Below are positions 21,303 to 57,210 of a DNA stretch of 64,000 nt, piece after piece. The stretch's first letter is position 1, and every line of letters starts with the position of its first letter. The notes under the pieces were generated by a model. The model was given only the letters and a program-made list of their open reading frames with translations. It was not told the DNA's origin and did not search any database. The stretch lies in the sequence record NC_061450.1, one strand, 5' to 3'. The position numbers were made by a program, and so were the translations under genes.

Positions 21303-21632
21303 ATGAGCATACCCGTAGAAATTGTAAAAGACTTTGTATTCGTTAAACGCTTTTGCTACTGGTTAGCTGCGGAGTTGACTCAGGGCACAATGCTGTTAAC
21401 GAACGAAGCAGATCGTGAAACAGTGATCAGCGCCTGTCGAAGTGTGCTGGAATCTTACAAGCCGCACTATGTGGCGTATGTTGTTAATGAAAAAATCTGG
21501 CCTGCTCTTAATGCGGCCATCGAACTTCGCGCTGTTGAAGTCGTTACCCGTGCGGCAAGCGCTGCCGATTGGTTTACTAACGAAAACGCCGAACTGTTCA
21601 TTACTAGAGGACAATTAGATGCGCCCGAATGA
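21303..21632 (+). CDS. hypothetical protein (start uncertain, 21243 or 21303)
   Basis: GAGG SD before 21303. Confidence 0.65.
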   Translation: MSIPVEIVKDFVFVKRFCYWLAAELTQGTMLLTNEADRETVISACRSVLESYKPHYVAYVVNEKIWPALNAAIELRAVEVVTRAASAADWFTNENAELFITRGQLDAPE

Positions 21633-41778: not shown

Positions 41779-42068
41779 TGACTATTCAAACTCCTGCTGT
41801 TGTTGCTGAGTCGCTGGTGCATAACGCCCAAAATTATTTTGGGATCAAAGGTAAGTCCTGTACGCGATTTTCAACGACAGAGAAAAACATTCTGTTGCTG
41901 AGTGGTCATAATCGCTATCTTCCTGACGACTATGTTGACCAGCTCAAGCGTTCTTTTCACGATATTGATTGGCTGATGTTTAAAGTTGGCACTGACGACT
42001 ATGCTTTTTTAAGTCTCAGTCAAACCAAAAACTGGTCGCGTCTGTCAATGAAATATCTCGATAAATAA
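41778..42068 (+). CDS. hypothetical protein
   Basis: GAGGAG SD; TAATG coupling. Confidence 0.8.
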   Translation: MTIQTPAVVAESLVHNAQNYFGIKGKSCTRFSTTEKNILLLSGHNRYLPDDYVDQLKRSFHDIDWLMFKVGTDDYAFLSLSQTKNWSRLSMKYLDK

Positions 42069-42080
42069 TTCCTGACAAAT

Positions 42081-42305
42081 AAGAGGGCATCGCATCAGGT
42101 GCCACGATTATAAACTGCAAGCGATTTGCTGGCCCCTGTGCTTACCCACATCCCCCAAGATACAGAGTTGCATTGGGTGCCGGCTCTTTTTTGAAGTGTT
42201 CTGCGAGAGAGCGCTTCACAAAGGTATAGTCCATGATTGTTTCACTTAGACTGCTTATCGTCTCTATGTCCGATGATACGCGTGGCGATAAGCAGTCACT
42301 TTTTT
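42081..42305 (+). ncRNA. candidate structured ncRNA with C-rich loop
   Basis: Nested AAGAG/CTCTT, GGCATC/GGTGCC, TGCAA/TTGCA, CTGTG/TACAG around loop CTTACCCACATCCCCCAAGA; then an 11-bp GCGA-capped hairpin (2 G.U) and a 12-bp perfect terminator stem plus T-run. Confidence 0.5.
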
Positions 42306-42334
42306 ACAGAGCATCAACCAGTCTGTGTTCTGTG

Positions 42335-42386
42335 CAAAAGCGTGGTCAAAATAGCTGTTGTGTTTGACCAGTCTTTATCGTACCAT
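42335..42386 (+). promoter_or_regulatory. sigma70-type early promoter with upstream element
   Basis: CAAAA-GCG-TGGTCAAAAT; -35 TTGTGT 42358; 17 nt; TACCAT 42381. Confidence 0.7.
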
Positions 42387-42446
42387 ATAAACAGTTGAGC
42401 AATAGTGCTCAACACATTGCATATACTAATACTGAGGAGTATTAAC

Positions 42447-43955
42447 ATGGCTCGTATCGAAACTTCTACTAACCTGATTGGCAAAACTATCACTCTGCTG
42501 GACGGCACCAAAGCTAAAATCACTGGCGCCATCGCTAGTGGTTATCAGCACGACAAAGGCACCAAGCGCATCCCAACCCGTTGCGTCGTTAAGAAAGGCA
42601 GTGGTTTTGCTGAAATCGAAAAGCTGCCTATGTCGCAACTGACTGACACTGGCGAAGGTTATGTTGAGCGTAAAGCAACCGCTGCCAAGCCTGCTGCTAA
42701 AACTTCGAAAGCAGCCAAGACCACTAAGGTGGCCGCTAAAACTCCGCGTGCTGCTAAAACTGAAAAAGCCGTCAAGCCTTCTCGCAAGGCAAAAGCTGCC
42801 GAAGAGCCTGCCGAGCCACGCACTCGCGTTCGTCGTAAAAAATCAGCCGCTGCTGAGCCTGTAATGATTCAGGCAGTCGATGAAGATTTTGCTACCTCTC
42901 TGGCGCAGCGCCTGTTTGAGCACCTGAAAGATAACGAACTGTTGCGCCTCAACACTGACAACGCAACGCCTGTAGCTAACGACTACGATCTGAAATACGG
43001 CGTAGAGTTCGCTGAGCCGAACATGATTCACGTCACGCTGGGCATCGAATACGCCATGCCGCAGCCTGAGCCAGAAGCTGGCACTGACGTAGAGCTGGAC
43101 GATGCAGTTGTTGCGCGTGCTGCTAAGAAAGTCGGCAAGACTGTTGGCAAGAAACTTGCCGCAGCGATCAAGAAAGCGTATGGCATCCCTGCTGCTGAGT
43201 TCCTGCCGGGCACCGTGCTGTCACTCAACGAAGCCCAGTTCATCTACTGCGGCCCGTCGAAAGATGATGCAGACACTGCGTATCTGTACAGCGCCGAAAC
43301 TGATAAGTTCCGTCCTGTGACTTCTGTCAATCTGTCCAAGTATGAGCTGGTCATGGACGATGAAGAGGCAGAAGAGGAAGAGGAAGAGGAAGAAGAGGAC
43401 GAAGAAGAAGAGGACGTCGCTGATGATTCTTCCGATGAATATACCTACGTCTCTGTGACTAAGCAGCATCTGGCAGACGTTAGCAAAAGCGTGACCGCCA
43501 AGTATCACCAGAAGATGGCTGATATGTGGGGCATCGATGCAGACGTGCTGGTCCCTGGTCTGGTACTGTCAGATGGCGAAACAACATTCGCATACGTCGG
43601 CTTCAACAGCAAAGGCGCGTTAATCGTTATCGACCCAGAAGATGGCGAACTGATGATCTACAAGAAAGCCGACGTTGACACGCTGACCGACTTCGCTGCT
43701 GTTATCGGCGATGAGGGCGAAGAAGAAGCAGAAGACGACGCCGAAGAAGAAGAAGATGGCGACGACGAAGAAGAGGAAGAGGAAGAAGAGGAAGGCGAAG
43801 ACGACGACTTTGATTTCTCTGATGACGACAACGAAGACTTCTCTGACCTGAACCACGACGAGCTGGTGGACAAAGTGACTGAGCTGGGTCTGGCCAAGCC
43901 ACGCGCTGCTGCTAAAATGTCAGAAGAAGACCTGCGCGAACTTCTGTCTAACTAA
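42447..43955 (+). CDS. multidomain protein with K/A-rich linker, two poly-acidic tracts and HeH-like C-terminus
   Basis: GAGGAG SD; composition; paralogous to 44018. Confidence 0.85.
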   Translation: MARIETSTNLIGKTITLLDGTKAKITGAIASGYQHDKGTKRIPTRCVVKKGSGFAEIEKLPMSQLTDTGEGYVERKATAAKPAAKTSKAAKTTKVAAKTPRAAKTEKAVKPSRKAKAAEEPAEPRTRVRRKKSAAAEPVMIQAVDEDFATSLAQRLFEHLKDNELLRLNTDNATPVANDYDLKYGVEFAEPNMIHVTLGIEYAMPQPEPEAGTDVELDDAVVARAAKKVGKTVGKKLAAAIKKAYGIPAAEFLPGTVLSLNEAQFIYCGPSKDDADTAYLYSAETDKFRPVTSVNLSKYELVMDDEEAEEEEEEEEEDEEEEDVADDSSDEYTYVSVTKQHLADVSKSVTAKYHQKMADMWGIDADVLVPGLVLSDGETTFAYVGFNSKGALIVIDPEDGELMIYKKADVDTLTDFAAVIGDEGEEEAEDDAEEEEDGDDEEEEEEEEEGEDDDFDFSDDDNEDFSDLNHDELVDKVTELGLAKPRAAAKMSEEDLRELLSN

Positions 43956-44017
43956 TCGAACAACCGGGCGCCCGCCGCAGGGCGCTTAACTCATTTCATA
44001 TTCTGGAGACTTACGAT

Positions 44018-45151
44018 ATGGCGAAGGCTAAATCAATCCAAACGACCAACACCAATCTGCTGTATGCTCGTGTTGTTCGTGCTGACGGTACTAAAACGTT
44101 CATCAACAAAATCAACGCCAACGGTTACGGCACTGACGCGAAAGGTGGTCAGATTCACAAAACGCGTATCGTCCAGGCAGGCAAAACTTTGCGTGAACTG
44201 CCAGAAGCTATGGCGAAAGGTGAGTTTGTTCTTGTCGGTGGTATCGCGCACAAGCTCAACAAAAAACAACAGCGTGGCCTTGCGTCTGGTGACGATGCGT
44301 TTCTCGATGATATCAATGTTGACCTCGATCGTCTGCAATTCGTTGAGCCTGAGACTGCGACAACCGGCCGTCGTGCTACTCTGCATACGCCAGAGACTAT
44401 CGCAAAGCGTGTGTCCAAGCGTGCTCTGAAATCAGCAACAGAAAAAGCTGAGAAACAGCCCAGCGCCAAGCGTTCACGCAAAGCAGCAAAAGCTGAGGGC
44501 ATTGAGGTTGATATGCTCGACAAGAAATCACAGACAGCCACACGCAAGCGTGATCGTAAAGCCGCATCCGATACATCTGTGATTAAGCAGATGCCACGCG
44601 AGTTAAAGCGGCTTATCAGTGACGGCCAGATCAAGCTCAACAGCAAGCAAGCTGAACAGGTGCTGACAAGTCTGGGGCTTGACGCTGAGTTTTACGCTAT
44701 GTCCATTGAGAAACATTTCGGTGGTCTGAGTCTTGTACTGCCTCAACGTGAAGCGCCTGTAGAGAAGAAAGGCAAACGTGCTTCTACCAAAGAGCCGACG
44801 TATGTTGCTGCCAAGCAGGTCAAGCAGTTGGTCAAGAATCTCAAAACCCGTCTGGTACCGCCTACAGCAAAGTTCGCCGCTCAGCACAAAAAGAAACTTA
44901 AGGAAGTGCGTGAGTTCTGGAGCAAGGCTCTGGGCATGAGTTCTCACAAGGACGTCAAGCCCGGCCTGACAGTTATCGACGACTACGGTAACAAGTTAGT
45001 GCTGGTAGCGATTGACGCTGTATCAACAGTGTTCGCTCCAGCCAAGAAAGACGGCGATGAGCGTTTGTTTGCTCATGCCCTTCTCAATCAGAACGGCAGC
45101 CCACGTCACTTTAAGCTGGCACCTGCTGATGAACTGGATGCGTCCGTATGA
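44018..45151 (+). CDS. basic K/A-rich protein, paralog of 42447
   Basis: GGAG SD; shared TNL..DGTK..I...GY..D N-domain. Confidence 0.85.
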   Translation: MAKAKSIQTTNTNLLYARVVRADGTKTFINKINANGYGTDAKGGQIHKTRIVQAGKTLRELPEAMAKGEFVLVGGIAHKLNKKQQRGLASGDDAFLDDINVDLDRLQFVEPETATTGRRATLHTPETIAKRVSKRALKSATEKAEKQPSAKRSRKAAKAEGIEVDMLDKKSQTATRKRDRKAASDTSVIKQMPRELKRLISDGQIKLNSKQAEQVLTSLGLDAEFYAMSIEKHFGGLSLVLPQREAPVEKKGKRASTKEPTYVAAKQVKQLVKNLKTRLVPPTAKFAAQHKKKLKEVREFWSKALGMSSHKDVKPGLTVIDDYGNKLVLVAIDAVSTVFAPAKKDGDERLFAHALLNQNGSPRHFKLAPADELDASV

Positions 45152-45546
45152 AGATAAAACACAACGACGTTCTGGTAAATGGCATTTTTGCTCAACTGTA
45201 TAGCCGCATGACACTCGCGGCTTGTCAGGGTCTGTATGTTTATTGGGGCGACCTTAGCCCAGTATTGTTTGGTATGCAGTTTGATAAAGTAGACGACGAT
45301 CAAGCAGAAGCCCTGTGGGCCATTCTTGATGAGTCAATCAAGATGGACGCCAAAGCTGGACGTCTGCCACTTGCAGCATTGTTTGTATCTCGCAAAGGCG
45401 GAGCGCGTACACCACGCGACCAGTTCTATGTGTCCTATAAACACCACTACGGTAAAAGCATCACCGAGCAGGACTGGTCAGATATTGTAAAAAGTATCTG
45501 GCAGACCTACCAACTGCGCGGTAAATCGCTGGAGCATTCAAAATGA
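45148..45546 (+). CDS. putative winged-helix protein
   Basis: YWGDLS..ALWAILDESI..AGRLPLAALFVSRKGG..PRDQFY resembles small wH domains often fused to HNH nucleases. Confidence 0.45.
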   Translation: MKIKHNDVLVNGIFAQLYSRMTLAACQGLYVYWGDLSPVLFGMQFDKVDDDQAEALWAILDESIKMDAKAGRLPLAALFVSRKGGARTPRDQFYVSYKHHYGKSITEQDWSDIVKSIWQTYQLRGKSLEHSK

Positions 45547-46013
45547 AGCCGAGCAAAGTTAAGATCAGCCGTAGCCCGATGCGTCCCGAAGAAGTCAACC
45601 ACAAGCTGGCAAACATTGCCAACATGATTCTCGGCACCATCGGAACGCAAGTGACGTTGATGAGTCAGACCATGACTCTCAACATGGCAAACTATCACTG
45701 GCTTACCAACGTAACAGACACAGAGCAAGATACTCCTGCCAACAAGCAGCTCTTGCATAAAACTGTAAAAGACGTAAACGAGTATTGTAGAACCAACAAG
45801 ATTCGTCTGGGATTACTAATTATCCCGCACACGTCTGCTTCTGATTACGCCTCAGATGAAGTGTGTGCCATTCCGTGGGCGCATGTCTGTACGGACGCAA
45901 GACTACGCCAGACGGTTAAGAGCCTGTTTGAAAGGGTTGAAGCTGACAACGAAGACGGACACAAGTTTGTGCGTGACGCCAAAACCGATGCAGAGGGTGG
46001 CAATGTTTTATAA
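45543..46013 (+). CDS. hypothetical protein
   Basis: GGAG SD. Confidence 0.75.
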   Translation: MKPSKVKISRSPMRPEEVNHKLANIANMILGTIGTQVTLMSQTMTLNMANYHWLTNVTDTEQDTPANKQLLHKTVKDVNEYCRTNKIRLGLLIIPHTSASDYASDEVCAIPWAHVCTDARLRQTVKSLFERVEADNEDGHKFVRDAKTDAEGGNVL

Positions 46014-47253
46014 AGAACTGTTTTCGCCAGAGGAACATCAAACGTTTTTGAATTTGGTGGGCTGGCGATTAATTGATAGCGCGGTACCCAAGTATCTTGA
46101 AAGCTCCCAGCACGCGCTTAAGGTGCGACACAGTGTGATCAAGTACAACCGCCCGTCACAGATTACTACGCCTATCTTGCCGCGTATTCGTACCACAACT
46201 GTTATGCGTTTGTTTCGTGCCATTCGTGATGGCAACTTGGGATTGCCTTGTGCGCAGCTTGCTGCATTGTTTGACCTGGGTATGGGCGTTCCCAAGCAAC
46301 GTGACATTGCGCAGTACATCAGGGACTACAATCCTGAACATGACCCAAACGGCGAAGCACTTAAAAGCATTCGCACTATGGTGGTACAGTATCAGCGCAA
46401 GGTTCGTCGCAGTCTGAACAACTGGCAGTATCTGCCACCAGCAGAGTATGTGGCTCAGTTGTTGAAGATGCAGCGGTTCATCGGTCTCAAAGAAAACGGT
46501 TACAAAAAGCGTCTTGCAGTACCGGACGGGATACCTGTTGTGTTGATCTACGCGAACAGCAACGTGGCTGAAAAAGAGTTCACGCTGGTAGATGCGTTTA
46601 TGATCAGCGCTCTTGGGTATCCCGTTCCATTTGCTCAGACGGCATTGCGTAAAGAGTTCAAAGCGCCAAAGACATTCAAGTCTAAAGCGTTGGCAGGACG
46701 CAGTATGTACGCGATGGTTATGGGTATTGTCTACTGGCCTGGAGAAAAGGCTTTCAAGATGATGCGCATGTGCCGTAGTCTGGACATTGATGACTACACT
46801 GTGTTGCTTGACCAGTTCGAAGACCTGCAAAGTAAAGAGCTACGTCAGGCGTCAAAGCATCGCATGATAGATCGTGAGCACCACGAAGTTATGCGGACCA
46901 CTGTTACCAAGTATGAGCATCGTGATGACCTCACAGCCAAGCAAGCTAAACGTTTGGCAGAAGCTCAAGAGTATTTCCAGCAACGGCGTGATGCATTGAG
47001 CCAGCTGGATAAACTCGAAAAGCAGGCAGCGCGTGAACTTGAACGCACAGGCCCTGTAGCCTCCGCGCACTTCTGTGCGGTAGATGCAGGTACCATTGTA
47101 AACCGCGACCAGTATCTTGGAGTCAAGAATACTCTGGAGCGTACTGAAACCATTCTCGGCGGTTGGGGATTCGAAACGTTATCGAATGCAGCCGTGCGTG
47201 ATTCTGAAATGACTTACATCGATGGTCCGAAAGGACGTTGCTGGTCACTTTAA
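46003..47253 (+). CDS. hypothetical protein
   Basis: GAGGG SD; 416 aa; C-terminal coiled coil. Confidence 0.85.
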   Translation: MFYKELFSPEEHQTFLNLVGWRLIDSAVPKYLESSQHALKVRHSVIKYNRPSQITTPILPRIRTTTVMRLFRAIRDGNLGLPCAQLAALFDLGMGVPKQRDIAQYIRDYNPEHDPNGEALKSIRTMVVQYQRKVRRSLNNWQYLPPAEYVAQLLKMQRFIGLKENGYKKRLAVPDGIPVVLIYANSNVAEKEFTLVDAFMISALGYPVPFAQTALRKEFKAPKTFKSKALAGRSMYAMVMGIVYWPGEKAFKMMRMCRSLDIDDYTVLLDQFEDLQSKELRQASKHRMIDREHHEVMRTTVTKYEHRDDLTAKQAKRLAEAQEYFQQRRDALSQLDKLEKQAARELERTGPVASAHFCAVDAGTIVNRDQYLGVKNTLERTETILGGWGFETLSNAAVRDSEMTYIDGPKGRCWSL

Positions 47254-47275
47254 CTGTTTATCTGAGGAGATACAA

Positions 47276-50200
47276 ATGACCGATACTAACAACAGCGGAG
47301 CACAGCGCTTTGGTGCTGAGGAACAACAGCGCAGCGCAGACGCTCAACGCTTGGCAAATGCTGGTGGCGAGAAGTGCGATATCATCGTAGTTCTTTCACC
47401 GACCAGCAACACTGATGATGTTCAGTCGCTGGACCGTGACGGTAACCTGCAGGCATATAACTTTACTGGCGTCAAATCTCATGACCGCCTGGTGCAGTTG
47501 TTAGAGCACGTGGGTCCTGAAAACAAAAAGCCACATTCTGCCTGGCACATCTTTCAGCCATCAAGTGGCGTGCCTGCTGAAATCAGTGTGGTGGAATCGT
47601 TTGATAATAAGTATACCGCGCGGGTTGTTCGCTATTCTGTAAATCTAACTGTCAACGAAATGCGCAGCTTGCTGAGCCGTGCATTGTTCGACGTTACCGG
47701 CGAAGGCGATCTCAACGATACCGTGTCTAAAGCAGGTATTTTCGCAATCTTCCTCATCGAAAACAAACAAGCTGTAAATGTAGTTCGTGAGATTGAGAAC
47801 CAGTTCGAAATTCTGCGTAGTCAACATGCAACTGTAAGTGTTGCCGATATCAGCGACGAAGAACTGGAGCAGCCTGTAATCAACTGGCGTAATCTGCCTG
47901 GCGCAAATAACTTTGTGCTGGTCGAAGGCGTGAAGCGTGCCTTCGTTATTCAGAACATGCAGGGACAGTTAGTAACCTTTTCAAATTCCGTTATTGGAGA
48001 ACAAACCGTGGCACCACAAAATAAAGCACCAGTAGTTGATGCAGTTGATCTTGATGATGACCAGTTCGACGCGCCAGAAATTAAAGGCCGTGACTTCCTG
48101 GGCTATCAAGCTGATCAGCTGACCATCGAAAACAAAACCGAAGCGCTGCTGGCGCTGAACTACGATCTGACCGACTGGGAAGATGAAGCCATCGAAGAGA
48201 CGTTCCTGGCTGAGCAAGAGAAGTTTCTCGAAAGCAGCGAAGACGAAGACAGCGAAGAAGCTGCCGACGATGCTGATTCAGAAGATGAAGAAGACGGCGA
48301 AGAAGAAGCTGCCGACGAAGATGAAGATGGCGAAGAAGCTGAGTTCAGCGCCGTTGACACCTTTGCCGATCTGCTTGACGAAGCGCAGTATGACCGTGCC
48401 AACCTGAAACGCATTATCTTTATTCTGGGCGGCACCTGCCTTCGCGCTGATACCGAAGAAACGCTGACTGCCAAAATTCTGGCTAACATCGCCGAGCGTG
48501 AACTCGACGAAGCTGAGTTTGTCGAAATGCTGTCCGACGTTATCGTTAGCGGCATGGCTCAACGCGGTGCTGATGCGCAGGTATTCTCTGACTGGCTGGA
48601 CGCGTCCGATGAAGACGCAGAAGAAGACAGCGAAGAAGCTGACGATGCGGACGATGCGGACGATGCTGATACCGACGAAGATGAAGACGAAGATGAGGAA
48701 GAAGACGAAGCCCTTTCGTTTGAAGATCCTCTCGATGCCTTTGACTACGACGGTGCACAGCTTGACGCGCAACAGCGTATCGATGCTCTGACCGCGCTGG
48801 GCGTTTCTACCGAAGGTCTGAACACCATTCAGATCATGAAGCTGTTCCGTGCCAAGCAGGAAGAGAACGGCCTGAATACTCATGAGCCAGAAGACATTGC
48901 TGATGAAGAAGAATCAGAAATCGCTGTCCTGCTGGCAACTGCCGAAGAAGAAGATCTGTGCACCATCCTTGATCTGATTGGCGTACCGTACGATGCAGGC
49001 TCAGATCGTAGTGACCTGATCGAACTGATTGAAACCTCTGGTGGCGAACCTGAGCACGGTACCAACCTCTACAACGCAGCGCTGAGCTACGGCCTGAACG
49101 CAAGCGAAGTAAACGACGTTACCTATAGTGATGTGCTGGCGGCATTCCTGCTGGCGTACTTCTCTGTAGACAGCGGCGAAGACCTGGACGGCGATGATGC
49201 TGATTTTGCCGAAGACGATGATGCAGAAGACTCAACTGATTTTGAACGTTCAGTTGGTGAGCAAATCGTGCAGGCTGCGGGCGAAGCAAATCACGGCGCA
49301 AACCCTCTGGGCATTACGCTGGACGACGGCGCTAAGTTCCTGACTCCAGGTGAAAACACTCCTGCTGGTCGTCTTATGTCAATCGACATGCCTCAGTCGC
49401 TGATCATCAACTTCACGCTGACTGACCGCAACACGTTTGAAGACAGCGATGAGCTGGCAGATGTTGACGGTCTGAACTATCGCTTCCCGTTCAACAATCC
49501 GAAGCTGGAAGAGAAAGCACGCGGCAGCATGTATCAGCCGGCGGCAACTCTGATTGAAATCATGGAGCGCGGTGCAACTCCACGTTTCCTGGTAGACCAG
49601 AGCCAGTTCGACGTTGAAGCGTACAGTTCAAAACTCAATGACCTGTTCGGCGCTGAAATCGAAGGCAGCCTGTATCAAGGCCTGCTTGAAGACGGTGAAG
49701 ACCCTCGCGAAGTTGGTCTGAAAGTCGGTGACTTCATCGATGATGAAATGCTTGAAGATGACGACATTGATCCGAGCTACTGGAAAGACTTTGTCGGCCA
49801 CGACATGGCGATTCACTCTCTGATCAACGGCCACATCGGTGTGCGCCCTGTAACCATCGAAGAGCGTAACTCAGTCCTGTGTCTGGGCGTGCTCAACGTT
49901 GCTCTGCCTGGCGTTTGGTCAATCAGCGATAAGCAACTGCCTAAGATGCTGGACACAGCTATCAACGCAGTCAAATCGCTGCTGGCTGAAAACACCAAGA
50001 TCAACACCTACGTTGCGTTCACCATGAGCAGCGGCAGCCTGGTTGCTGATCGTACTCTGTTCAACGTTGTTGACCATCTGCGTGACAACTACGAAGAAGT
50101 GTTTAGCTATTCTTCTGCTGATTGCGCCGTGTTCGAAGACAACGAAGACATTCTGGAAATCGCATCCAGCCTCGACAACAACGAGCGCCTGCCGCTTGAA

Positions 50201-50323
50201 GTTCTGTCCTCGGGCTATGCAGCCAAAACGTTTGAGAACGGCGGTGACCTGACCCTTCTGATTCCGTGCTTTGAGTCTGACGATGCAGACGACGAAGACG
50301 AAGACGAAGGCGACGACGAATAA
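47276..50323 (+). CDS. very large acidic multidomain protein
   Basis: GAGGAG SD; about 1015 aa; several D/E tracts separating short helical modules. Confidence 0.9.
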   Translation: MTDTNNSGAQRFGAEEQQRSADAQRLANAGGEKCDIIVVLSPTSNTDDVQSLDRDGNLQAYNFTGVKSHDRLVQLLEHVGPENKKPHSAWHIFQPSSGVPAEISVVESFDNKYTARVVRYSVNLTVNEMRSLLSRALFDVTGEGDLNDTVSKAGIFAIFLIENKQAVNVVREIENQFEILRSQHATVSVADISDEELEQPVINWRNLPGANNFVLVEGVKRAFVIQNMQGQLVTFSNSVIGEQTVAPQNKAPVVDAVDLDDDQFDAPEIKGRDFLGYQADQLTIENKTEALLALNYDLTDWEDEAIEETFLAEQEKFLESSEDEDSEEAADDADSEDEEDGEEEAADEDEDGEEAEFSAVDTFADLLDEAQYDRANLKRIIFILGGTCLRADTEETLTAKILANIAERELDEAEFVEMLSDVIVSGMAQRGADAQVFSDWLDASDEDAEEDSEEADDADDADDADTDEDEDEDEEEDEALSFEDPLDAFDYDGAQLDAQQRIDALTALGVSTEGLNTIQIMKLFRAKQEENGLNTHEPEDIADEEESEIAVLLATAEEEDLCTILDLIGVPYDAGSDRSDLIELIETSGGEPEHGTNLYNAALSYGLNASEVNDVTYSDVLAAFLLAYFSVDSGEDLDGDDADFAEDDDAEDSTDFERSVGEQIVQAAGEANHGANPLGITLDDGAKFLTPGENTPAGRLMSIDMPQSLIINFTLTDRNTFEDSDELADVDGLNYRFPFNNPKLEEKARGSMYQPAATLIEIMERGATPRFLVDQSQFDVEAYSSKLNDLFGAEIEGSLYQGLLEDGEDPREVGLKVGDFIDDEMLEDDDIDPSYWKDFVGHDMAIHSLINGHIGVRPVTIEERNSVLCLGVLNVALPGVWSISDKQLPKMLDTAINAVKSLLAENTKINTYVAFTMSSGSLVADRTLFNVVDHLRDNYEEVFSYSSADCAVFEDNEDILEIASSLDNNERLPLEVLSSGYAAKTFENGGDLTLLIPCFESDDADDEDEDEGDDE

Positions 50324-50377
50324 ATCTGTTAATGTAGGGCGTAGCGCATGTTGCGCCCTCATCTTTCGGAGAACACC

Positions 50378-51253
50378 ATGTCAGACAAGATTGATGCGAG
50401 TGAGGCTATAGCCAATCATATTGCAGGCTTGGAGTCTCAACTTCGCGGCGAAAAGATTGTTAGCTCCAGTCTTCAGGAAGAGCTTAACGACCGTGTTGTG
50501 GAGCTGGCTGCTGTTGGTGCACAACATCGTGCCAAGCAGAAACTAAATGACCAGCTGGTTGAGACGGTCAATGCCGTTCGTGCTGAGCTTGAATCTCAGC
50601 GAACCATGTTCAGAGAAACAACGTTGGAGCTGCAACGCCAGCACAACGAAACGCGCACCAGTCTGGAGCGCAGTGAGCGTGAACTTGAAGCTGAACGCAA
50701 CCGCCCTCTGGGCAGCACAGACTTCATCATGCACATGATGGTCACGCAAGCTGCATCGTGGTTAAATCAGCGTGTTCTTCTGACCTTTACGCACAAGGCA
50801 TTCACGCACAAGGGCTTGACTCGTTTGCAGGGTCTTGTGCTCAACGCTCAAACCACCAGCGCAGATCTGATTGACTTGCCTCAAGGCTTGCAGGAAATTG
50901 TAAAGACGTATTGCACAACATCGCGTACAGCATTTGATTCCGATCAGTTGCTGGCAGATATTAGTAATTATGTTGATAGCAATGCATCAACAATCCTGGA
51001 ACTGCCCGCCGTTCAGGACCTGTTTGAGTTTCGTCAGTCTCTGCGTGAGAATGCGAAGACCGAGAAACTTGCCCGAGCGCACCTAAAACACATCGCATGT
51101 CCAGACGTGTTGGTGGGCTTCTTTGTAATGACGACTGATAACCCAGTTGTTTATCGTGAGCAGCACGAACACGCGCTGCTTGAATCTGTAAAAGAAATTG
51201 CAGTGAGTTTCATTGAAGATATTTCTTTTGAAATTCCTATCAGTCTCGAATAA
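50378..51253 (+). CDS. coiled-coil protein
   Basis: GGAG SD; heptad-rich N-terminal half. Confidence 0.85.
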   Translation: MSDKIDASEAIANHIAGLESQLRGEKIVSSSLQEELNDRVVELAAVGAQHRAKQKLNDQLVETVNAVRAELESQRTMFRETTLELQRQHNETRTSLERSERELEAERNRPLGSTDFIMHMMVTQAASWLNQRVLLTFTHKAFTHKGLTRLQGLVLNAQTTSADLIDLPQGLQEIVKTYCTTSRTAFDSDQLLADISNYVDSNASTILELPAVQDLFEFRQSLRENAKTEKLARAHLKHIACPDVLVGFFVMTTDNPVVYREQHEHALLESVKEIAVSFIEDISFEIPISLE

Positions 51254-51261
51254 CACACAGT

Positions 51262-51273
51262 AATTCTGTAAAC
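51262..51273 (+). promoter_or_regulatory. TGTA-core motif
   Basis: AATTCTGTAAAC about 50 nt before ATG 51324. Confidence 0.45.
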
Positions 51274-51323
51274 GTTATTAGAACAAACCGGCACACGCCA
51301 TCGATTATTAATCTGGAGTTTTC

Positions 51324-51878
51324 ATGTCAAAGTCCACCGCTGTTTCTGCACCAACTCGTACCGACCGTCTGAGCAAAAAGCTGGGCAGCATTGCTACCTC
51401 ACTGGCAAAATCAAGCGCGATGCCGCACGACATTATCATCACCGCAACGCAGGTTCATGAAGTGCCTGGCTTTATCACCGAGCTGACTTCTGATAGCGTT
51501 ACCATTCGTCACAAAAAAGGCCACGGCAGTTCCTCGCAGGTGCTGTCTACTTTCCCACTATCTCAGGTTATCGAGCGTGTCGGTGAAGCTGGTGGTCACG
51601 GTTCACTGACTGTTATCGGCAACGTGCCTGTTCGCATTCTGAAAGGTCAAGCCGTTCAAGTCAAAGGCGGTCAGATTCTGGCTACTGACTTCGAAAGCAA
51701 AGAAGTTACCGTGATCAACACTGCGATTCCTGGCGTGTCTGTTTCAATGTCTGTTAACGAAAGCGCGGCTGCCAAGAAATACAACATCGCGGCACCGACC
51801 AAAGCGAAGAAATCAGACAAGCCGGCCAAAGCAGTTAAAGGCGCTAAGCCTGCCAAGGCAGCAAAATCAAAAAAGTAG
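51324..51878 (+). CDS. beta-rich protein with AKP-rich basic tail
   Basis: GGAG SD; ends KPAKAVKGAKPAKAAKSKK. Confidence 0.85.
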   Translation: MSKSTAVSAPTRTDRLSKKLGSIATSLAKSSAMPHDIIITATQVHEVPGFITELTSDSVTIRHKKGHGSSSQVLSTFPLSQVIERVGEAGGHGSLTVIGNVPVRILKGQAVQVKGGQILATDFESKEVTVINTAIPGVSVSMSVNESAAAKKYNIAAPTKAKKSDKPAKAVKGAKPAKAAKSKK

Positions 51879-51914
51879 TTTCTGACGAAGATTTTTAATC
51901 TCAGTCAGTAAATA

Positions 51915-51987
51915 CTGTAAACTGTATTCGTCAAGAGCGCTGAATTGTTTGGCGCTCTAGTTAAACCTAATCTGTAAACTTTATTCG
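51915..51987 (+). promoter_or_regulatory. tandem TGTA-core motifs
   Basis: CTGTAAACTGTATTCG (51915-51930) and CTGTAAACTTTATTCG (51972-51987), 15/16 identical, each followed by a hairpin. Confidence 0.55.
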
Positions 51988-52023
51988 AATCACGTCGATT
52001 CTAATCCATAGGAAAAAGTAATC

Positions 52024-52791
52024 ATGGCAAAAGCTAAAGCAAATACCGCAACTATCGTTCTGGCTAAAATCCTGGGTGTGTTTGTTGAGAACGCAAGCGA
52101 TAAAGAAATCGCTGCTGCCCTGGCCGAAGCCGGTCTGACAGTATCTGGTGGCAAAGTCGTTAAGGCTGATAAAGCTGCCAAAGGCGGTAAAGGCAAGAAA
52201 GCTAAAGTCGCAACTGTTGAGCAGATCGTTGCTGCGGTCAAGGCCGAAGAAGAAATCGACCTGGCCGGCGTAAGCGAAGATGACCTGCGTGCCGCTGTAG
52301 TCAAAGCCAAGCTGTCTACCGCCAAGAAAGCTAAGGCGCTGGACGCAGAGGAGTTGACTGAACTCCTGAACGATGCAATGGGCGTTGAGTCTGACGAAGA
52401 AGAAGACGAGGACGAGGACGAAGACGACTCGGACGAAGAAGACGAAGACGAAGATGAAGACGACGCCGATGAAGATGAAGACGGCGACGACGAAGACGAA
52501 GACGAAGATGAAGATGAGGACGAAGACGAGGATGAAGATGAGGACGAAGATGAAGTCGACCTCGACAACCTCGACGAAGATGAGCTGTTAGCTCTGGTCC
52601 TCGAACACAAGCTGGCGCCAGCCAAGAAAGCTAAAAAGATGGACGAAGACGAACTTCGCGAACTGTGTGAAGCCCACTTCGGCGGCGATGACGAAGAAGA
52701 AGAGGACGAAGACGAAGACGAAGACGAAGATGAGGACGAAGATGAAGACGAAGACTTCGACGACGAAGATGAAGACGAAGACGACGAATAA
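52024..52791 (+). CDS. polyampholyte protein with two HeH-like repeats and long D/E tracts
   Basis: AGGA SD; repeats 300 nt apart; about 55-residue D/E tract. Confidence 0.85.
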   Translation: MAKAKANTATIVLAKILGVFVENASDKEIAAALAEAGLTVSGGKVVKADKAAKGGKGKKAKVATVEQIVAAVKAEEEIDLAGVSEDDLRAAVVKAKLSTAKKAKALDAEELTELLNDAMGVESDEEEDEDEDEDDSDEEDEDEDEDDADEDEDGDDEDEDEDEDEDEDEDEDEDEDEVDLDNLDEDELLALVLEHKLAPAKKAKKMDEDELRELCEAHFGGDDEEEEDEDEDEDEDEDEDEDEDFDDEDEDEDDE

Positions 52792-52844
52792 GTCCTGATC
52801 TGCCGCGCCGCTAGTATGTCACGATGTGAGTAACTAGCACAGCG

Positions 52845-52900
52845 AAAAAACTTCGAAAAAAGTTGGAAAAATCTTGTAGGCGTGCATTGCAGATGATAAT
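52845..52900 (+). promoter_or_regulatory. phased A-tracts upstream of a -10-like GATAAT
   Basis: A-tracts start at 52845, 52856 and 52867 (11-bp period); GATAAT 52895-52900. Confidence 0.5.
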
Positions 52901-52981
52901 GTACGTCTACAGGAAATGAAAACCTGAACACTTTTGTTTTTAACTCGCGCAAGAGCGCACACCAAAATTCTGGAGAAGAAT

Positions 52982-53488
52982 ATGTCTAAGAAAGTTATTG
53001 CCAGCCTGAACAAAAACCTGAAAGCTATCGCTAAGTCTGAAAACGCTCTGACCAAAACCGTCTCTGCAACTACCAAAGAGATCGAAAACCTGGCTTCACA
53101 GCGCGCTGGTATCGAAGCGCAGATCGCTGAACTGTCTGGTGCTGCTGCTCCGGCCAAAGCTGCTAAAGCAGAGAAAGCGCCTAAGAAAGAAAAGGCTGCT
53201 AAAGCTGAAAAGCCTGCTAAAGCCGGTAAGAAAGAAAAAGCTGCCAAGCCTGCTAAAGCAGAGAAAGCCGCTAAGCCTGCCAAAGCTGAAAAAGCTGGCA
53301 AGAAAGCCAAAGCTGAAAAAGCTGAAAAGCCTGCTAAAGCCGGTAAGAAAGACAAAGCAGCTAAAGCTGAAAAATCTGCCAAGCCTGCTAAAGCTGAAAA
53401 AGCTGGCAAAAAAGTGAAAGCTGAAAAGCCTGCCAAAGCTGGTAAAAAAGCAAAAGCTAAAGAAGACGATTTCGACTTCGAAGTTTAA
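52982..53488 (+). CDS. histone H1/AlgP-like AKP-repeat protein
   Basis: GGAG SD; N-terminal coiled coil; KAEKPAKAGKK repeats; acidic tip EDDFDFEV. Confidence 0.8.
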   Translation: MSKKVIASLNKNLKAIAKSENALTKTVSATTKEIENLASQRAGIEAQIAELSGAAAPAKAAKAEKAPKKEKAAKAEKPAKAGKKEKAAKPAKAEKAAKPAKAEKAGKKAKAEKAEKPAKAGKKDKAAKAEKSAKPAKAEKAGKKVKAEKPAKAGKKAKAKEDDFDFEV

Positions 53489-53541
53489 GTCCTGATCGGC
53501 TGATGCATCGCGGTGCATAAGCAAACACAGAATGGGTTGAC

Positions 53542-53583
53542 GCCAAACGCGTTGACCCATTTTGCATTCTGTCAGAATTTTTT
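53542..53583 (+). terminator. hairpin/terminator
   Basis: AATGGGTTGACG/CGTTGACCCATT (2 G.U) followed by a T-rich tract. Confidence 0.55.
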
Positions 53584-53602
53584 ACCGAATAGGATTCATC
53601 GT

Positions 53603-54070
53603 ATGTCTGACAATTTTCGTAGTGTTGTTTCTCTGCAATTCTCCCACGCTGCCTCTCTGGCACGCGCTCTCAAAACGTTGAAGAATCATTGTGTGTTTGG
53701 TGGCCTTGAGGTTACTGAATCAAACGCTCGTGATATCGGCACGTCCTTCCTCAGTGAAATACTTGAAGGCAAATGTCCTATAGTGGACGCATCAATAACA
53801 TCCATCGACGGCCTTGCCCATCGTCGCGATAAAGTAACCTTTGATGAAGGCGAAAGCGCCTGTATCGAAGCCTTCAATACTATCATTATGGAGCACAGTG
53901 CCCGCGTTACGCTGCGTCGTGAACTCTCCAAGTTCCGTCTTGAGACAAACAAAGACGTTAACGACCTTCTGTGGAAGGACGATGCAGGTACCAAACAGGC
54001 AATCGAACTCTCTCCACATCATGGACTAAGTTGTGACTGTGAGACCTGCGAGGATATGAAAGATGACTAA
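53603..54070 (+). CDS. hypothetical protein
   Basis: AGGA SD; C-terminal CDCETC. Confidence 0.75.
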   Translation: MSDNFRSVVSLQFSHAASLARALKTLKNHCVFGGLEVTESNARDIGTSFLSEILEGKCPIVDASITSIDGLAHRRDKVTFDEGESACIEAFNTIIMEHSARVTLRRELSKFRLETNKDVNDLLWKDDAGTKQAIELSPHHGLSCDCETCEDMKDD

Positions 54071-54752
54071 GCGCACAGCAATCGAACATGATGCCACTCG
54101 CCTGAGTCGCAACGGCTGTCCTCACTGTAAGAATCAGCCTGTGATGTTCCGCATTGATTACGAAGATGGCGTTACTCGTTATCTGACTCATCACCACAGC
54201 CTGACTACATCGGCTCGTCAATGTCCAAACATATCTCGCTTTGGTCTTGGCATTGACCCAGATGCAGCTTTGGAGAACTGGCTGTCTACCTGTCGCGATA
54301 AACTGGCTCAACGTGTTAGTCGCTCTCACAGTGATCGCCTGTTCGATAAGGCTCAAGAGGAAATTGAGCTGGCAATTATTCCTCAGACAGAGCAGACTAT
54401 AGGTCAGATGTTTTCTGCGTATGGTAATTTGCAGAACAGTCTCCAACAGGCGATGCATAGGACTGTAAATATCAGTGATACTCTTTATTGCATTGTTTAC
54501 TTTGATGTGGCTCAGGACGGTGTTGAGACCAAGTTGCTCAACAAACAATCCAACATTGAAGTCAACATGCTGGCAACGCTTGAGCCTGATGCGCTTATCG
54601 CTTACGGTAAGTTGCAGCAACGCATCCAGCAGTGGGTAGCTGACGGCATGTCCAGTCCGTTCCCTATCTCAAATGACGAAGACGCCCACCAGATTTATTT
54701 GAAGTCTGCGAATCAGCAAATCTCTGGTCAAAACCGAGATAGCTCTGAATAG
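54063..54752 (+). CDS. hypothetical protein with N-terminal zinc-finger (Lar-like)
   Basis: CPHC...QCPN..AALENW. Confidence 0.6.
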   Translation: MTKRTAIEHDATRLSRNGCPHCKNQPVMFRIDYEDGVTRYLTHHHSLTTSARQCPNISRFGLGIDPDAALENWLSTCRDKLAQRVSRSHSDRLFDKAQEEIELAIIPQTEQTIGQMFSAYGNLQNSLQQAMHRTVNISDTLYCIVYFDVAQDGVETKLLNKQSNIEVNMLATLEPDALIAYGKLQQRIQQWVADGMSSPFPISNDEDAHQIYLKSANQQISGQNRDSSE

Positions 54753-54821: not shown

Positions 54822-55181
54822 ATGTCTAGCGCATCAACGCAGATTCAGCACGTCACGCCAGAAGAAGTCGAACGCCGACGCCGTCTTGTGTACTACGCAG
54901 TTCCAGTCAGCGACAGGCCCGACTTGATCGAGGGTGCAAAACGTTTTATGTCCCAGCGCCTTGAAATTCCCGTGGCTGATGTGCGTGAAGGCTTGGTGTG
55001 CCATCGCAAGAACGGCCAGAACTATGTCTTGTGTGTTTTCACTCGCACGGGTCCATTGTTCCTGACCGAAGACGGCGAGCCTTATGTATCGACATACGCT
55101 AACTTCCCTTACACCTTCGACTTAACAGTTGGAGAATATCGCTTCTCAGGCAGATCTAATTCGGAGCATCAACATGGCTAA
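54822..55181 (+). CDS. hypothetical protein
   Basis: GAGGG SD. Confidence 0.75.
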   Translation: MSSASTQIQHVTPEEVERRRRLVYYAVPVSDRPDLIEGAKRFMSQRLEIPVADVREGLVCHRKNGQNYVLCVFTRTGPLFLTEDGEPYVSTYANFPYTFDLTVGEYRFSGRSNSEHQHG

Positions 55182-57210
55182 AGCAGCAAAGCCAACTAAA
55201 AAGAAAGACAACGGTGGCAGCCAAGAAGGCTTTGTCATCGCAGAAGGGCTTGATGGTATTCGTCTTAACCCAGGCATGTACATGGGTGAGCAGGGTGCTG
55301 ACATGGCGTATCGCGCCGTGAAAGAGCCTGTGGACAACGTGTACGATGAATTGATGGCGGGCCGCTGTCGAGTGATGGAAGTTGTTATCGACTATGACAA
55401 CGACATTAACATCGTGGCAGACCAAGCTGGTGGTATTCCTACCGACTTCAAAGTGTTGAAAGACGGCACCAAAGAAACGGTAATGACCGCAGCGTTTAGT
55501 CGTGTTCACGCAGGCGGCAAGTTCAACGATAAAGCCTACAAAACATCTGCCGGTACTCATGGCGTTGGTGTTGCAGCGCTTAACGCAATCTCAAGTCAGT
55601 TGCGTGTGTGGTCGATGTATAAAGGCGGTTGTGCCTATCAGATGTGGCAGAAGGGTGAAGCCAAAAGTGGCAAAGACCCAAAGAAAGTCAAGTCCATCGA
55701 TAAAGATGTGATGAGCCTGCTGCGTGAAAAGAAACACAGCAAGTACGGTACTGTGGTGGCTTGGTCACTTGATCAAGATATCGTGAGTGCTGATGCCAAG
55801 CGTGGTAAAAAGCTGGCTAAAGGTTATCGTCATGCTGCGCCAGACCCAGCTCGTATCGGTCAGTGGCTGCGCAACATGTCCATGCTCAACCCAGGGTTTG
55901 AGATTCACCTGACGCTGATCAAGAAAGGCAAGCGCAAAGAGTTCACGTTCCATAACAAGAAAGACCTGACGTATGTGGTCAAGACCATGTGTGCAGAACG
56001 TGAAATCGGTATGGTCGGTAAGCCGCTTGTGTTCAAAAACGATTACGTCACAGTTGCCTTAGCGTGGACCGACCACGTTGATGCAGATAACTTCCTCAGC
56101 TTTGTTAACGCCAGCCCAACAGTTGATGGTGGGTGGCACGTTGTTGGCTTCCGTGATGCTTTGTTTGAAGCAATCAAGCCGCACATGAAAGAAGCGAAAG
56201 GCAAGAGCAAGAAAAAGCAGGGCTTCAAGCAGGAAGACTTGCTGATTGGCCTGACCGGTATGTTTGACTGGCGTATGCATGGAGCAAGCTACACGTCACA
56301 GGTCAAAGACAAGCTGGCAACTCGCGTAGAGAAAGAAGTCTACGAAATGCTGAAAGACCAGTTGATGCAATACTTCAAGGACAACAAAAAGGTCGCATCA
56401 ACAATCATCAAACGCGCCGAGGCCATGAACAAAGGCCGCGAAGAATTATCTGCCGTTGTTAAGTCTATGGCAGACACCAAGAAGAAGCTGAAAGGCAACG
56501 CCTTGCCTGCTGACCTGATTGCTGCTAACAACTGCAAACCTCATGAGCGTGAACTTATCGTGGTGGAAGGGGATTCTGCTGGTGGTACAGCAACTGATGC
56601 CCGCAACCCTGATTATCAGGAAGTAATGCTGGCAGGTGGTAAGCCACTCAACGGTCTGAAAGCAAGTCTGGCAGATGTGCTCAAACACAAAGAAGTGCAG
56701 GGCATGTTGATCAGCATCGGTGCTGACCTCAAGACGCTGGACCCGAAAGCTGAGAACCCAGTGTTGAGCGTTGACAAGCTGCGCATCGGCAACTTGTTGT
56801 TCTTGATGGATGCCGACCCTGATGGCTTCCACATCGCAACGTTGTTCCTCGGTGTTGTGTATCGCCTGCTGCCGGATATGTTCCGTGAAGGCCGCGTGTG
56901 GATTATCGATAGTCCACTGTACAACGTGGTACACAAAGGCATTCACTATGGCGGCATGACTTTCGAAGAGTGTCGAGCTAAAGCGCCAAGTGCTGTAAAA
57001 GATCGTGACATTGTTCGCGCTAAAGGTTGGGGTGAAGTCGAGCCTGACGTACTTGAAGCCATCGCGTTCAATCCCAAGACTCGTCGCCTGATTCGAGTCA
57101 ACCCATTCGAAAACAAAGAGCAAGAACGTTTCTTCCGTGGCATTCTCGCAGAGGACGCCGTGCATCGCCGTCGCCTGCTGGGCTTAGAAGAAGCTGTGGC
57201 TCTGGTATAA
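55174..57210 (+). CDS. gyrB: type IIA topoisomerase, GyrB/ParE-like subunit
   Basis: GIRLNPGMYMG; EPVDNVYDE; DQAGGIP; HAGGKF; SAGTHGVGV; TOPRIM VEGDSAGG; MDADPDGFHI; KGWGE. Confidence 0.93.
   Translation: MAKAAKPTKKKDNGGSQEGFVIAEGLDGIRLNPGMYMGEQGADMAYRAVKEPVDNVYDELMAGRCRVMEVVIDYDNDINIVADQAGGIPTDFKVLKDGTKETVMTAAFSRVHAGGKFNDKAYKTSAGTHGVGVAALNAISSQLRVWSMYKGGCAYQMWQKGEAKSGKDPKKVKSIDKDVMSLLREKKHSKYGTVVAWSLDQDIVSADAKRGKKLAKGYRHAAPDPARIGQWLRNMSMLNPGFEIHLTLIKKGKRKEFTFHNKKDLTYVVKTMCAEREIGMVGKPLVFKNDYVTVALAWTDHVDADNFLSFVNASPTVDGGWHVVGFRDALFEAIKPHMKEAKGKSKKKQGFKQEDLLIGLTGMFDWRMHGASYTSQVKDKLATRVEKEVYEMLKDQLMQYFKDNKKVASTIIKRAEAMNKGREELSAVVKSMADTKKKLKGNALPADLIAANNCKPHERELIVVEGDSAGGTATDARNPDYQEVMLAGGKPLNGLKASLADVLKHKEVQGMLISIGADLKTLDPKAENPVLSVDKLRIGNLLFLMDADPDGFHIATLFLGVVYRLLPDMFREGRVWIIDSPLYNVVHKGIHYGGMTFEECRAKAPSAVKDRDIVRAKGWGEVEPDVLEAIAFNPKTRRLIRVNPFENKEQERFFRGILAEDAVHRRRLLGLEEAVALV

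Follow-up and report, generated by a model that had tools for sequence, protein, structure and literature searches.

The pairing of a polycation with a polyanion is known so far mainly from eukaryotic chromatin (linker histone H1 with prothymosin-alpha, and the histone chaperones) and from eukaryotic viral factories. Bacteria carry H1-like proteins with repeats rich in lysine, alanine and proline (K/A/P), among them Pseudomonas AlgP, the C-terminal domain of PhaF, the tail of mycobacterial HupB/MDP1 and chlamydial Hc1/Hc2. Phages such as T7 and T4 encode acidic early proteins, Ocr and Arn, that mimic DNA, and repeats rich in aspartate and glutamate (D/E) have been discussed as DNA mimics. A precedent for competition by a DNA mimic is DMP12 with HU (PMC3643605), and phase separation in phage development was recently reported for SPO1 Gp27 (PMC13401047). 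Here we describe a locus in a 64-kb stretch of DNA (the window) from Erwinia phage pEa_SNUABM_5, in which genes g330 to g339 form a conserved ten-gene cassette of extremely acidic and strongly basic proteins with disordered tracts, followed by g340 to g342 as linkers.

Positions 42000-54000 of the window are 100% identical (megablast) to pEa_SNUABM_5 (MW366843.1; 267,169 bp; genus Rivsvirus). The window is the final 64 kb of that 352-gene record, and window position equals record position minus 203169; unprefixed coordinates below are window positions. Taxonomy places Rivsvirus in the PaBG/Lu11 group, and the group of pEa_SNUABM_5 comprises 'hairy' jumbo myoviruses, with Y3, Yoloswag, Alexandra, the Dickeya JA/AD1 phages, PaBG and Lu11 (PMC7412058, PMC6143709). 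All genes of the block are deposited as 'hypothetical protein' except g339, labelled 'putative valyl-tRNA synthase'. The seven genes that the original prediction had named here are all present with the starts it gave, in agreement with the deposited annotation, and the region contains no broken genes.

The ten genes stand in the same order directly upstream of a GyrB-like gene in Yoloswag, Y3, Alexandra and Yersinia phage fHe-Yen9-02, and the cassette is co-inherited in that order in Dickeya phages, PaBG and four distant metagenomic lineages as well. Homologues of g330 and g335 were found by tblastn in 57-58 phage records, with Erwinia, Dickeya and Yersinia as hosts. Over five genera, the net charges of orthologues were -56 to -70 for g330, +22 to +31 for g331, -174 to -201 for g335, +13 to +16 for g337, -89 to -100 for g338 and +26 to +30 for g339. 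The wider families (32-48% identity, reaching down to 32-40%) gave -53 to -78 for g330 (25 members) and -157 to -199 for g335 (21 members). The tract sequences themselves differ, being KAAKT-type in pEa_SNUABM_5, KPQPKAEP in the metagenomic contig L012 and KKEPKVQPKAD in L014. Since net charge is kept while tract sequences drift, selection acts on charge; and since distant proteins use other repeat units, it is charge and layout, not sequence, that are conserved.

In PaBG, homology links gp131 to g330 (E 6.6e-7), gp126 to g337 (E 1.4e-22), gp124 to g339 (E 8.5e-12) and gp122 to g341 (E 1.5e-5), and gp125, at 150 amino acids (aa), 66.7% D/E and net charge -93, is the positional counterpart of g338. 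The trio g337/g338/g339 corresponds to gp126/gp125/gp124, with acidic and basic members adjacent and kept as a set. Comparison of gp128 and gp127 with g334 and g335 by hhalign was not significant, leaving these as positional counterparts only. The PaBG cassette lies between the topoisomerase II genes and the genes for a sigma factor, SSB and UvsX. Contigs of distant g334 relatives combine a g334-like gene with a g330-like block polyampholyte, one or two small genes and an acidic g335-like gene, in the gene order of the cassette; in L012 a coiled-coil-like gene comes after the g335-like gene, and the metagenomic contig L017 also has a g337 homologue and a g338-like protein with the same helix-loop-helix motif as g338. 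With order and net charge kept over at least five genera, PaBG and distant metagenomic phages, the charged proteins hold up as a real co-inherited unit among replication genes.

We next quantified charge content and patterning, defining an acidic tract as at least 60% D/E in 20-aa windows. D/E content, from a composition script, was 23.5% in g330, 24% in g335 and 45.5% in g338, and the charge-patterning parameter kappa was 0.40, 0.29 and 0.59, respectively, against 0.17-0.24 +/- 0.02 for shuffled sequences (0.17 for the g330 shuffles). The fraction of charged residues in cassette proteins ranged from 0.30 to 0.55, with blocky charge patterning and repeated modules. In the 352-gene genome, extreme charge tracts occur in 11 proteins, and 6 of these sit in one 10-gene window, which 0 of 20000 permutations equalled for this post hoc set; for the acid-tract proteins alone, clustering was weak to marginal (p about 0.06). 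The long D/E tracts first noticed in the genes starting at 42447, 47276 and 52024 (g330, g335 and g338) are real, and their supposed maximum of about 55 residues was too short, given that g338 reaches ~79 aa. The claim of H1-like K/A/P tracts fared unevenly: g339 and the tail of g337 do have K/A/P-rich stretches, but g339 holds evenly mixed D/E, unlike a true H1 tail, and for g331, K/R-rich without K/A/P character, the label is only partly apt.

The first gene of the cassette, g330 (42447..43955, plus strand, as are all cassette genes), encodes a 502-aa protein of net charge -58. Two D/E tracts (aa 296-335, 43332-43451; aa 417-468, 43695-43850) and a 58-aa basic K/A/P/T tract that had been overlooked before (aa 75-132, 42669-42842) make it, by composition, a block polyampholyte. 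From the N-terminus, its parts in an AlphaFold2 model are a beta domain (aa 1-78), the basic tract, an alpha/beta domain, two 'helix + small beta barrel' units that are each followed by an acidic tract, and a C-terminal helix-loop-helix (aa 468-502, 43848-43952), with helices modelled at 470-479, 485-490 and 493-501 (predicted local distance difference test score, pLDDT, 87-91). A DDDFDF motif lies inside the second acidic tract. The model was built with 25 homologues, from a family of 31 clusters, and has a mean pLDDT of 70; its low-confidence stretches coincide with the charged tracts. Its best Foldseek matches in the PDB were tandem Agenet, Kin17 SH3-like, Tudor and UvrD Tudor domains, all non-significant (E at least 0.097). 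Downstream, g331 (44018..45151) encodes 377 aa, 18.8% of them K/R, with net charge +28. Its N-terminal beta domain is paralogous to that of g330 (hhalign probability 77%, E 2e-5), and its C-terminal 'helix + beta' domain, of the same kind as the g330 barrel unit by eye, matches g342 in a hidden Markov model (HMM) comparison (E 2.8e-9).

At the other end of the cassette, basic and acidic proteins are neighbours. The 184-aa g337 protein (51324..51878, net +15) joins a beta-rich domain to a K/A/P tail at aa 150-184 (51771-51875), 29-35 aa long, in which aa 156-184 are at least 75% K/A/P/R. A domain common to g337 and g330 was considered and rejected, as none is shared. The 255-aa g338 protein (52024..52791, 45.5% D/E, net -91) carries poly-D/E tracts at aa 113-191 (52360-52596) and 212-255 (52657-52788), the longest spanning 79 aa. 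A 40-aa helix-loop-helix whose loop is K-rich occurs twice (aa 83-122, 52270-52389; aa 183-222, 52570-52689), each time followed by a poly-D/E tract, and an EDFDD motif is conserved near the C-terminus. A whole-genome search with a motif HMM found this helix-loop-helix, with its AKKAKK-type loop, only in g338 (two copies, E 1e-19 and 1e-22) and at the g330 C-terminus (E 6e-15).

The last member, g339 (52982..53488; 168 aa, net +27), begins with an amphipathic helix (aa 1-53) and continues into 114 aa of at least 75% K/A/P/R (aa 49-162, 53126-53467), built of 9-aa K/A/E/P units from a 27-bp tandem repeat. It ends in an acidic-aromatic tip, (E/D)(D/E)F(D/E)F(D/E)(V/M), at aa 161-168 (53462-53485), conserved in all genera. 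Such acidic-aromatic FxF motifs recur close to the g338 C-terminus, in PaBG gp124 (which ends in DDDFEDFDDLD) and gp125, in the metagenomic counterparts and, for 13 of the 25 members of its family, inside g330. The valyl-tRNA synthase label of g339 is unsupported by Pfam, NCBIfam and PDB profiles and is a low-complexity artefact. Long Ser/Leu/Phe-rich open reading frames lie antisense to repeat-coding regions (minus strand; 51990-52952, 52834-53436 and 43658-43897); we rejected these as genes, as they are by-products of GAA/GAC and AAA/GCT repeats.

Between the two ends lies the largest protein of the cassette, g335 (47276..50323; 1015 aa, net -182; characterized by composition and AlphaFold2 model). 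Its D/E tracts are at aa 318-361 (48227-48358), 438-490 (48587-48745) and 632-657 (49169-49246), with an acidic tail at 995-1015 (50258-50320). An N-terminal alpha/beta domain (aa 32-235) is followed by five short helical modules separated by D/E tracts and by a C-terminal alpha/beta domain (aa 685-1000). Three of the modules are mutually related (M1~M3, E 4e-6; M3~M5, E 3e-4); their identity with the g338/g330 helix-loop-helix was rejected, as profile comparison shows a separate repeat family. The model (21 sequences, mean pLDDT 72) again has its low-confidence stretches at the charged tracts. Foldseek gave nothing below E 0.2 in the PDB, where the top matches were generic alpha/beta sandwiches; in BFVD it matched a 356-aa PaBG protein, possibly gp127 (E 2.3e-5), and, weakly (E 5.8e-3 and 0.47), proteins of actinophages that bear the name 'Rho termination factor N-terminal domain-containing'.

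The remaining members carry less charge or evolve faster. The small, uncharged g332 (45148-45546) and g333 (45543-46013) overlap neighbouring coding regions by a few bases, and small genes occupy their position in PaBG and the metagenomic loci too. The folded, mildly basic g334 protein (46003..47253; 416 aa, +14) is the best-conserved non-repetitive member of the block. It has no Pfam or PDB match, forms 16 clusters among 5.8 billion proteins and drew only 22 relatives in a profile search of 1.84 billion representatives. A terminator-like hairpin (50337-50358) precedes g336 (50378..51253), whose 291-aa product has a helical, heptad-like N-terminal stretch of ~115 aa, a putative coiled coil. 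This gene is fast-evolving, with orthologues at 14-28% identity against 33-90% for the other cassette genes.

As had been noticed, the cluster lies just upstream of the type II topoisomerase genes, which by annotation comprise a GyrB-like gene (55174-57210), three small genes and a ParC/GyrA-like gene (57941-59572), all on the plus strand; by tblastn the family spans many phages. The uncharged linkers g340 (53603-54070), g341 (54063-54752) and g342 (54822-55181) fill the interval, also on the plus strand. The last of these overlaps the GyrB-like gene start by 8 nt, carries a g331-type 'helix + beta' domain and is unannotated in Yoloswag and Y3.

Promoter-like motifs tie the cassette further to replication. 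The motif (A/T)(A/T)(A/T)CTGTAAA(T/C) has 56 genomic copies, its strand almost always matching the local gene direction, and its CTGTAAA(T/C) core is placed ahead of replication and nucleotide-metabolism genes; at a distance of 40-70 nt it precedes those for DNA polymerase, ligase, primase, clamp loader, SSB, sigma factor and methylase. Copies within the window are at 51266, 51915, 51972, 59621 and 63498. One, AATTCTGTAAAC (51266..51273, plus strand), stands upstream of g337 and recurs 58-69 nt from its orthologues in 5 genera; two tandem copies, CTGTAAAC (51915-51922 and 51972-51979, plus strand), flank a hairpin (51934-51958) upstream of g338, the proximal copy kept in all 5 genera and the distal one in most. 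A second motif, GCTAATTT, has 15 genomic copies, nearly all on the minus-strand structural block, including before both sheath genes, g163 and g156; none of the 15 is in the cassette. Replication-class motifs are thus present at g337 and g338, and no gene of the block has the structural-class motif.

Upstream of g330, we read from the sequence a candidate sigma-70-like promoter (TTGACC, a 16-17-nt spacer and TATAAA) with a hairpin in the 5' untranslated region (42364..42412, plus strand); a consensus scan missed it because the final -10 base is not T. The -35/-10-like elements and the 5' hairpin recur before g330 orthologues in 5 genera. Another sigma-70-like promoter (52873..52913, plus strand), with A-tracts upstream, precedes g339. 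Its -10 element, GATAAT (52895-52900), is flanked by the two arms (52873-52886 and 52900-52913) of an imperfect palindrome that is kept in 5 genera and in Yoloswag is a perfect 11-bp repeat, TGTAGACGTA...TACGTCTACA. The palindrome looks like an operator for a regulator, and the position of the -10 inside it suggests separate control of g339. These motifs probably define expression classes, and hence expression timing, and g330-g339 would be expressed early or in the middle of infection, before the late genes.

Family and fold searches gave no relatives of known function. Scans of all ten proteins against Pfam, PHROGs, NCBIfam and PADLOC returned only 'unknown function' PHROGs and sub-threshold noise. 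PDB sequence profiles of g330, g331, g334, g335, g337, g338 and g339 found nothing beyond compositional matches, such as the Mycoplasma L23 extension and eS6 for the basic proteins and QCR6 for the acidic ones. The linker histone winged helix (Pfam Linker_histone) had no Pfam or NCBIfam match in g331, g337 or g339; for a nucleoplasmin core or NAP domain there was no Pfam match, and no PDB structure matched the g330 or g335 models below E 0.09 (Foldseek). We do not claim the helix-loop-helix as SAP, HeH or Rho_N, as neither whole proteins nor isolated 41-48-aa segments from g338, g330, g335 and PaBG gp131 had a Pfam match at E up to 10. For the analogy with H1 and nucleoplasmin-type chaperones drawn in the original prediction, family-library and PDB searches thus found no homology to histone H1, nucleoplasmin/NAP or any other chromatin protein. 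In the literature searched, neither this cassette nor a comparable phage system had been described before, nor had charged disordered proteins of jumbo phages, and there was no report of demixing for any phage of the PaBG/Lu11/Y3/Yoloswag group.

What might such a cassette do? We tentatively favour, as a possibility, an early/middle polyelectrolyte module that remodels the nucleoid, altering DNA-protein electrostatics alongside the phage type II topoisomerase. Bulk electrostatics would be the main means by which its products affect DNA and DNA-binding proteins during infection. DNA would be coated or bridged non-specifically by the K-rich parts: g331, g339 with its repeat array on a helical stalk, the tail of g337 and g330's basic block. 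The polyacidic g338, g335 and acidic blocks of g330 would be DNA-like counter-ions that load, strip or buffer these polycations and probably host nucleoid proteins too, on the model of prothymosin-alpha or nucleoplasmin with linker or core histones. Specificity and multivalency could come from the small folded modules (the K-rich-loop helix-loop-helix, SH3/Tudor-like barrels and acidic-aromatic FxF tips), and replicating DNA would be the site where the module acts, in concert with the topoisomerase and the replication proteins. What we observed directly are composition, conservation, gene order, the promoter motifs themselves and the lack of matches to known families; that the proteins bind DNA or one another, and any phase separation, we infer from these. 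Blocky multivalent charges lead us to expect dense polyelectrolyte complexes, possibly condensate-like, and formation of a condensate or coacervate is no more than plausible.

Several observations weigh against nucleoid remodelling. The negative charge of the block (about -345) exceeds its positive charge (about +84) roughly four-fold, so the acidic proteins cannot simply be counter-ions of the cassette's own polycations. The g339 protein is K/E-mixed and not a pure polycation, with 13% D/E evenly interspersed with K (kappa 0.13). Pfam, NCBIfam and PDB profiles revealed no homologue among DNA-binding proteins, histones, histone chaperones or nucleoid proteins; the helix-loop-helix lacks a SAP, HeH or Rho_N match in Pfam even when scanned in isolation; and the assignment of g330's small barrels as Tudor/SH3-like draws on non-significant Foldseek matches (best E 0.097). 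Expression timing is read from motifs only. Charged low-complexity tracts are also frequent elsewhere in the genome, in g148 (a likely scaffold), SSB, SbcD, a helicase, g156, g34 and g237, and are therefore not specific to the block. Finally, the data would be matched almost equally well by a role in DNA mimicry or against the host.

That role is the main rival, which we consider somewhat unlikely. It holds that g338, g335 and g330 are DNA-mimic decoys that sequester host nucleoid proteins, nucleases, defence sensors or RNA polymerase factors, while the basic proteins act separately, for example in host-DNA shut-off, making the locus an anti-host or counter-defence module rather than one that organises phage DNA. 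The very high charge density and the excess of negative over positive charge suit decoys; the sigma-70-like promoter of g330 is compatible with early transcription by the host polymerase, and by annotation the phage has no protective nucleus-like shell. Known phage mimics, however, are small and folded with patterned charge, not poly-D/E tracts of 50-80 residues, and decoys would leave unexplained the co-inherited K-rich neighbours, the shared FxF tips and the constant linkage to topoisomerase, SSB and sigma genes. Relatives usually differ in their counter-defence genes, whereas the block is among the most syntenic parts of these genomes. Nor did PADLOC or anti-defence families match, although such libraries are not expected to contain proteins of this kind.

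An unlikely alternative is that there is no system at all: unrelated replication-region proteins would have gained charged low-complexity inserts in their linkers, tolerated by this phage lineage or generated in it by slippage on GAA/GAC and AAA/GCT repeats, and their clustering would be incidental. The spread of charged tracts through the genome, from SSB, SbcD and the helicase to g148, g156, g34 and g237, fits this account, as do the marginal clustering of acidic proteins alone and the tracts themselves, which are imperfect codon repeats with lengths that differ among relatives. Slippage does not readily account for a net charge tightly kept in each protein during sequence drift, for the same charge architecture in distant lineages with other repeat units, or for a cassette order kept from Erwinia to Pseudomonas phages. 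The tracts also contain specific short motifs (the FxF and the helix-loop-helix with its K-rich loop), and g338 and PaBG gp125 are almost wholly acidic tract, so that here the tract is the protein. As separate observations on charge in these phages, the SSBs of pEa_SNUABM_5 (L009:48278-49561, plus strand) and PaBG (L019:948-2159, minus strand) both have long acidic and basic tracts (~24% D/E, 23-25% K/R), and the window holds further acidic proteins outside the cassette at 21619-22491 (290 aa, net -57, without a Pfam match), 5415-5861 (148 aa, -29) and 19871-20419 (182 aa, -21).

Nucleoid remodelling also has a more ambitious form. The annotation of the 352-gene record contains no chimallin, PhuZ or multisubunit RNA polymerase, in agreement with the earlier statement that no chimallin or PhuZ is recognisable, though no dedicated chimallin profile search was made; a sigma-70-type factor is annotated. 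From this combination, cytoplasmic replication without a protein shell is expected. The shell-less phages of the PaBG/Lu11/Y3/Yoloswag group might then organise and shield their replicating genome in a dense polyelectrolyte DNA-protein phase, formed by block-charged acidic proteins and K-rich DNA binders around the replisome and topoisomerase, an independent electrostatic answer to the problem that the chimallin nucleus solves, which we regard as decidedly unlikely.

Less probable still is a transcription or replisome hub, in which the proteins would be scaffolds that concentrate RNA polymerase and the phage sigma factor, or parts of the replisome, through their acidic-aromatic tips, and would not compact DNA. 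The FxF tips resemble the protein-docking tips of SSB and T7 gp2.5; in PaBG the cassette has the sigma, SSB and UvsX genes nearby, and phage-driven condensates that organise transcription have been reported for SPO1 (PMC13401047). Against a hub, we found no sequence link to Gp27 or any transcription factor, and arrays of K/A/P repeats are seen more typically in proteins that bind DNA non-specifically. A hub overlaps with nucleoid remodelling, and sequence alone cannot separate the two.

The least probable account, in our view a very remote one, is that of virion-internal or assembly proteins, in which the basic members would neutralise packaged DNA and the acidic ones serve as scaffold, core or ejection proteins like T4-type internal proteins and acidic core peptides: the terminase and portal genes are also on the plus-strand block, and some scaffolding proteins have coat-binding ends that the charged helix-loop-helix modules may resemble, but the cassette is 140 kb away from the head genes, has the replication-class and not the structural-class motif, and finds rival candidates, g148 and g192, in the head module itself. 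In PaBG, a virion survey identified 14 proteins, none of them from gp122-gp131 (PMC7412058, Table 1), which disfavours the alternative that the cluster is purely structural. That proteome covered no more than 14 bands visible with Coomassie, a stain that poly-D/E proteins take up poorly, and such proteins are also hard to digest; with a survey this shallow and tracts this hard to detect, the absence is supporting, not decisive. The Y3 GenBank record has no mass-spectrometry flags on its proteins. The DNA-packaging half of the earlier inference is left without support.

Outside the cassette, the head region has charged proteins of its own. Between the major capsid and prohead protease genes, g148 (L008:3834-5936, minus strand) encodes a protein of 700 aa and net charge -136 that probably serves as scaffold or core. 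A head protein that may neutralise DNA is g192 (L009:6774-7484, minus strand; 236 aa, 29% K/R, 1.7% D/E, net +65), which has a structural-type motif upstream. Elsewhere in the window, an 835-aa protein (11627-14134, plus strand) has a signal-peptide-like start, a long N/T/Q-rich repetitive stalk and a C-terminal YadA-like membrane anchor (PF03895, E 6.6e-9, above the curated cut-off). It resembles a trimeric autotransporter adhesin, here phage-encoded, and its gene accounts for the AT-skew peak at 12-14 kb.

Should organisation or mimicry of DNA prove to be its role, the cassette would give phages their first multi-gene polycation/polyanion system based on intrinsically disordered proteins, and would help to explain how large phages without a shell handle a replicating 260-kb genome and host nucleoid proteins. 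Conserved in about 60 sequenced phages of plant-pathogen, enteric and Pseudomonas hosts, it offers a tractable, well-delimited protein set. Regardless of its reading, the analysis defines a conserved ten-gene unit of hypothetical proteins, corrects the misannotation of g339 and provides two candidate promoter classes for the group.

How does the locus compare with described systems? With H1 and prothymosin-alpha or nucleoplasmin-type chaperones it shares oppositely charged, largely disordered partners, a K/A/P-rich tail facing ~45-65% D/E, and conservation of charge rather than sequence, and multivalent electrostatic binding would be expected as it is for H1 with prothymosin-alpha. It differs in having no winged helix and no nucleoplasmin or NAP core, in the glutamate that g339 mixes with lysine, in the helix-loop-helix modules and folded end domains of its acidic proteins, and in its roughly four-fold negative excess. 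Like PhaF, g339 joins an amphipathic helix, here N-terminal, to a tandem array of 9-aa K/A/P-type units of variable repeat length. Unlike AlgP, PhaF, HupB or Hc1/Hc2, it has no Pfam or NCBIfam match, places Glu regularly in its repeats, ends in an acidic-aromatic tip and is phage-encoded beside a polyacidic partner.

Among DNA mimics (T7 Ocr, T4 Arn, ArdA and DMP12), the likeness lies in dense negative charge, probable early expression of g330 and plausible competition with DNA for its binders; the known mimics are compact folds that place carboxylates like phosphates, whereas the acidic parts of the cassette are long, disordered and co-inherited with polycations. The short acidic tips with aromatics on the otherwise basic g339 and PaBG gp124, and DDDFDF in g330, recall the SSB tip, T7 gp2.5 and the acidic tails of HMGB1, although g339 and gp124 have no OB fold or HMG box. 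The ~35-aa unit L..L....GL-(K-rich loop)-..L..LL, modelled as two helices with pLDDT about 90, may be similar in outline to SAP, HeH and Rho_N, a likeness still supported by the predicted helices and the weak BFVD matches to phage proteins with Rho_N names; it has no match in Pfam or among solved structures, and the g335 modules are unrelated in profile to the g338/g330 motif. With the Chimalliviridae nucleus and SPO1 Gp27 condensates, the common theme would be spatial organisation of replication or transcription by large phages, although pEa_SNUABM_5 encodes a sigma-70-type factor, has no annotated chimallin, PhuZ or multisubunit polymerase, and shows no similarity to Gp27. A member of none of these families by sequence, the cassette would work, at best, like the known polycation/polyanion pairs.

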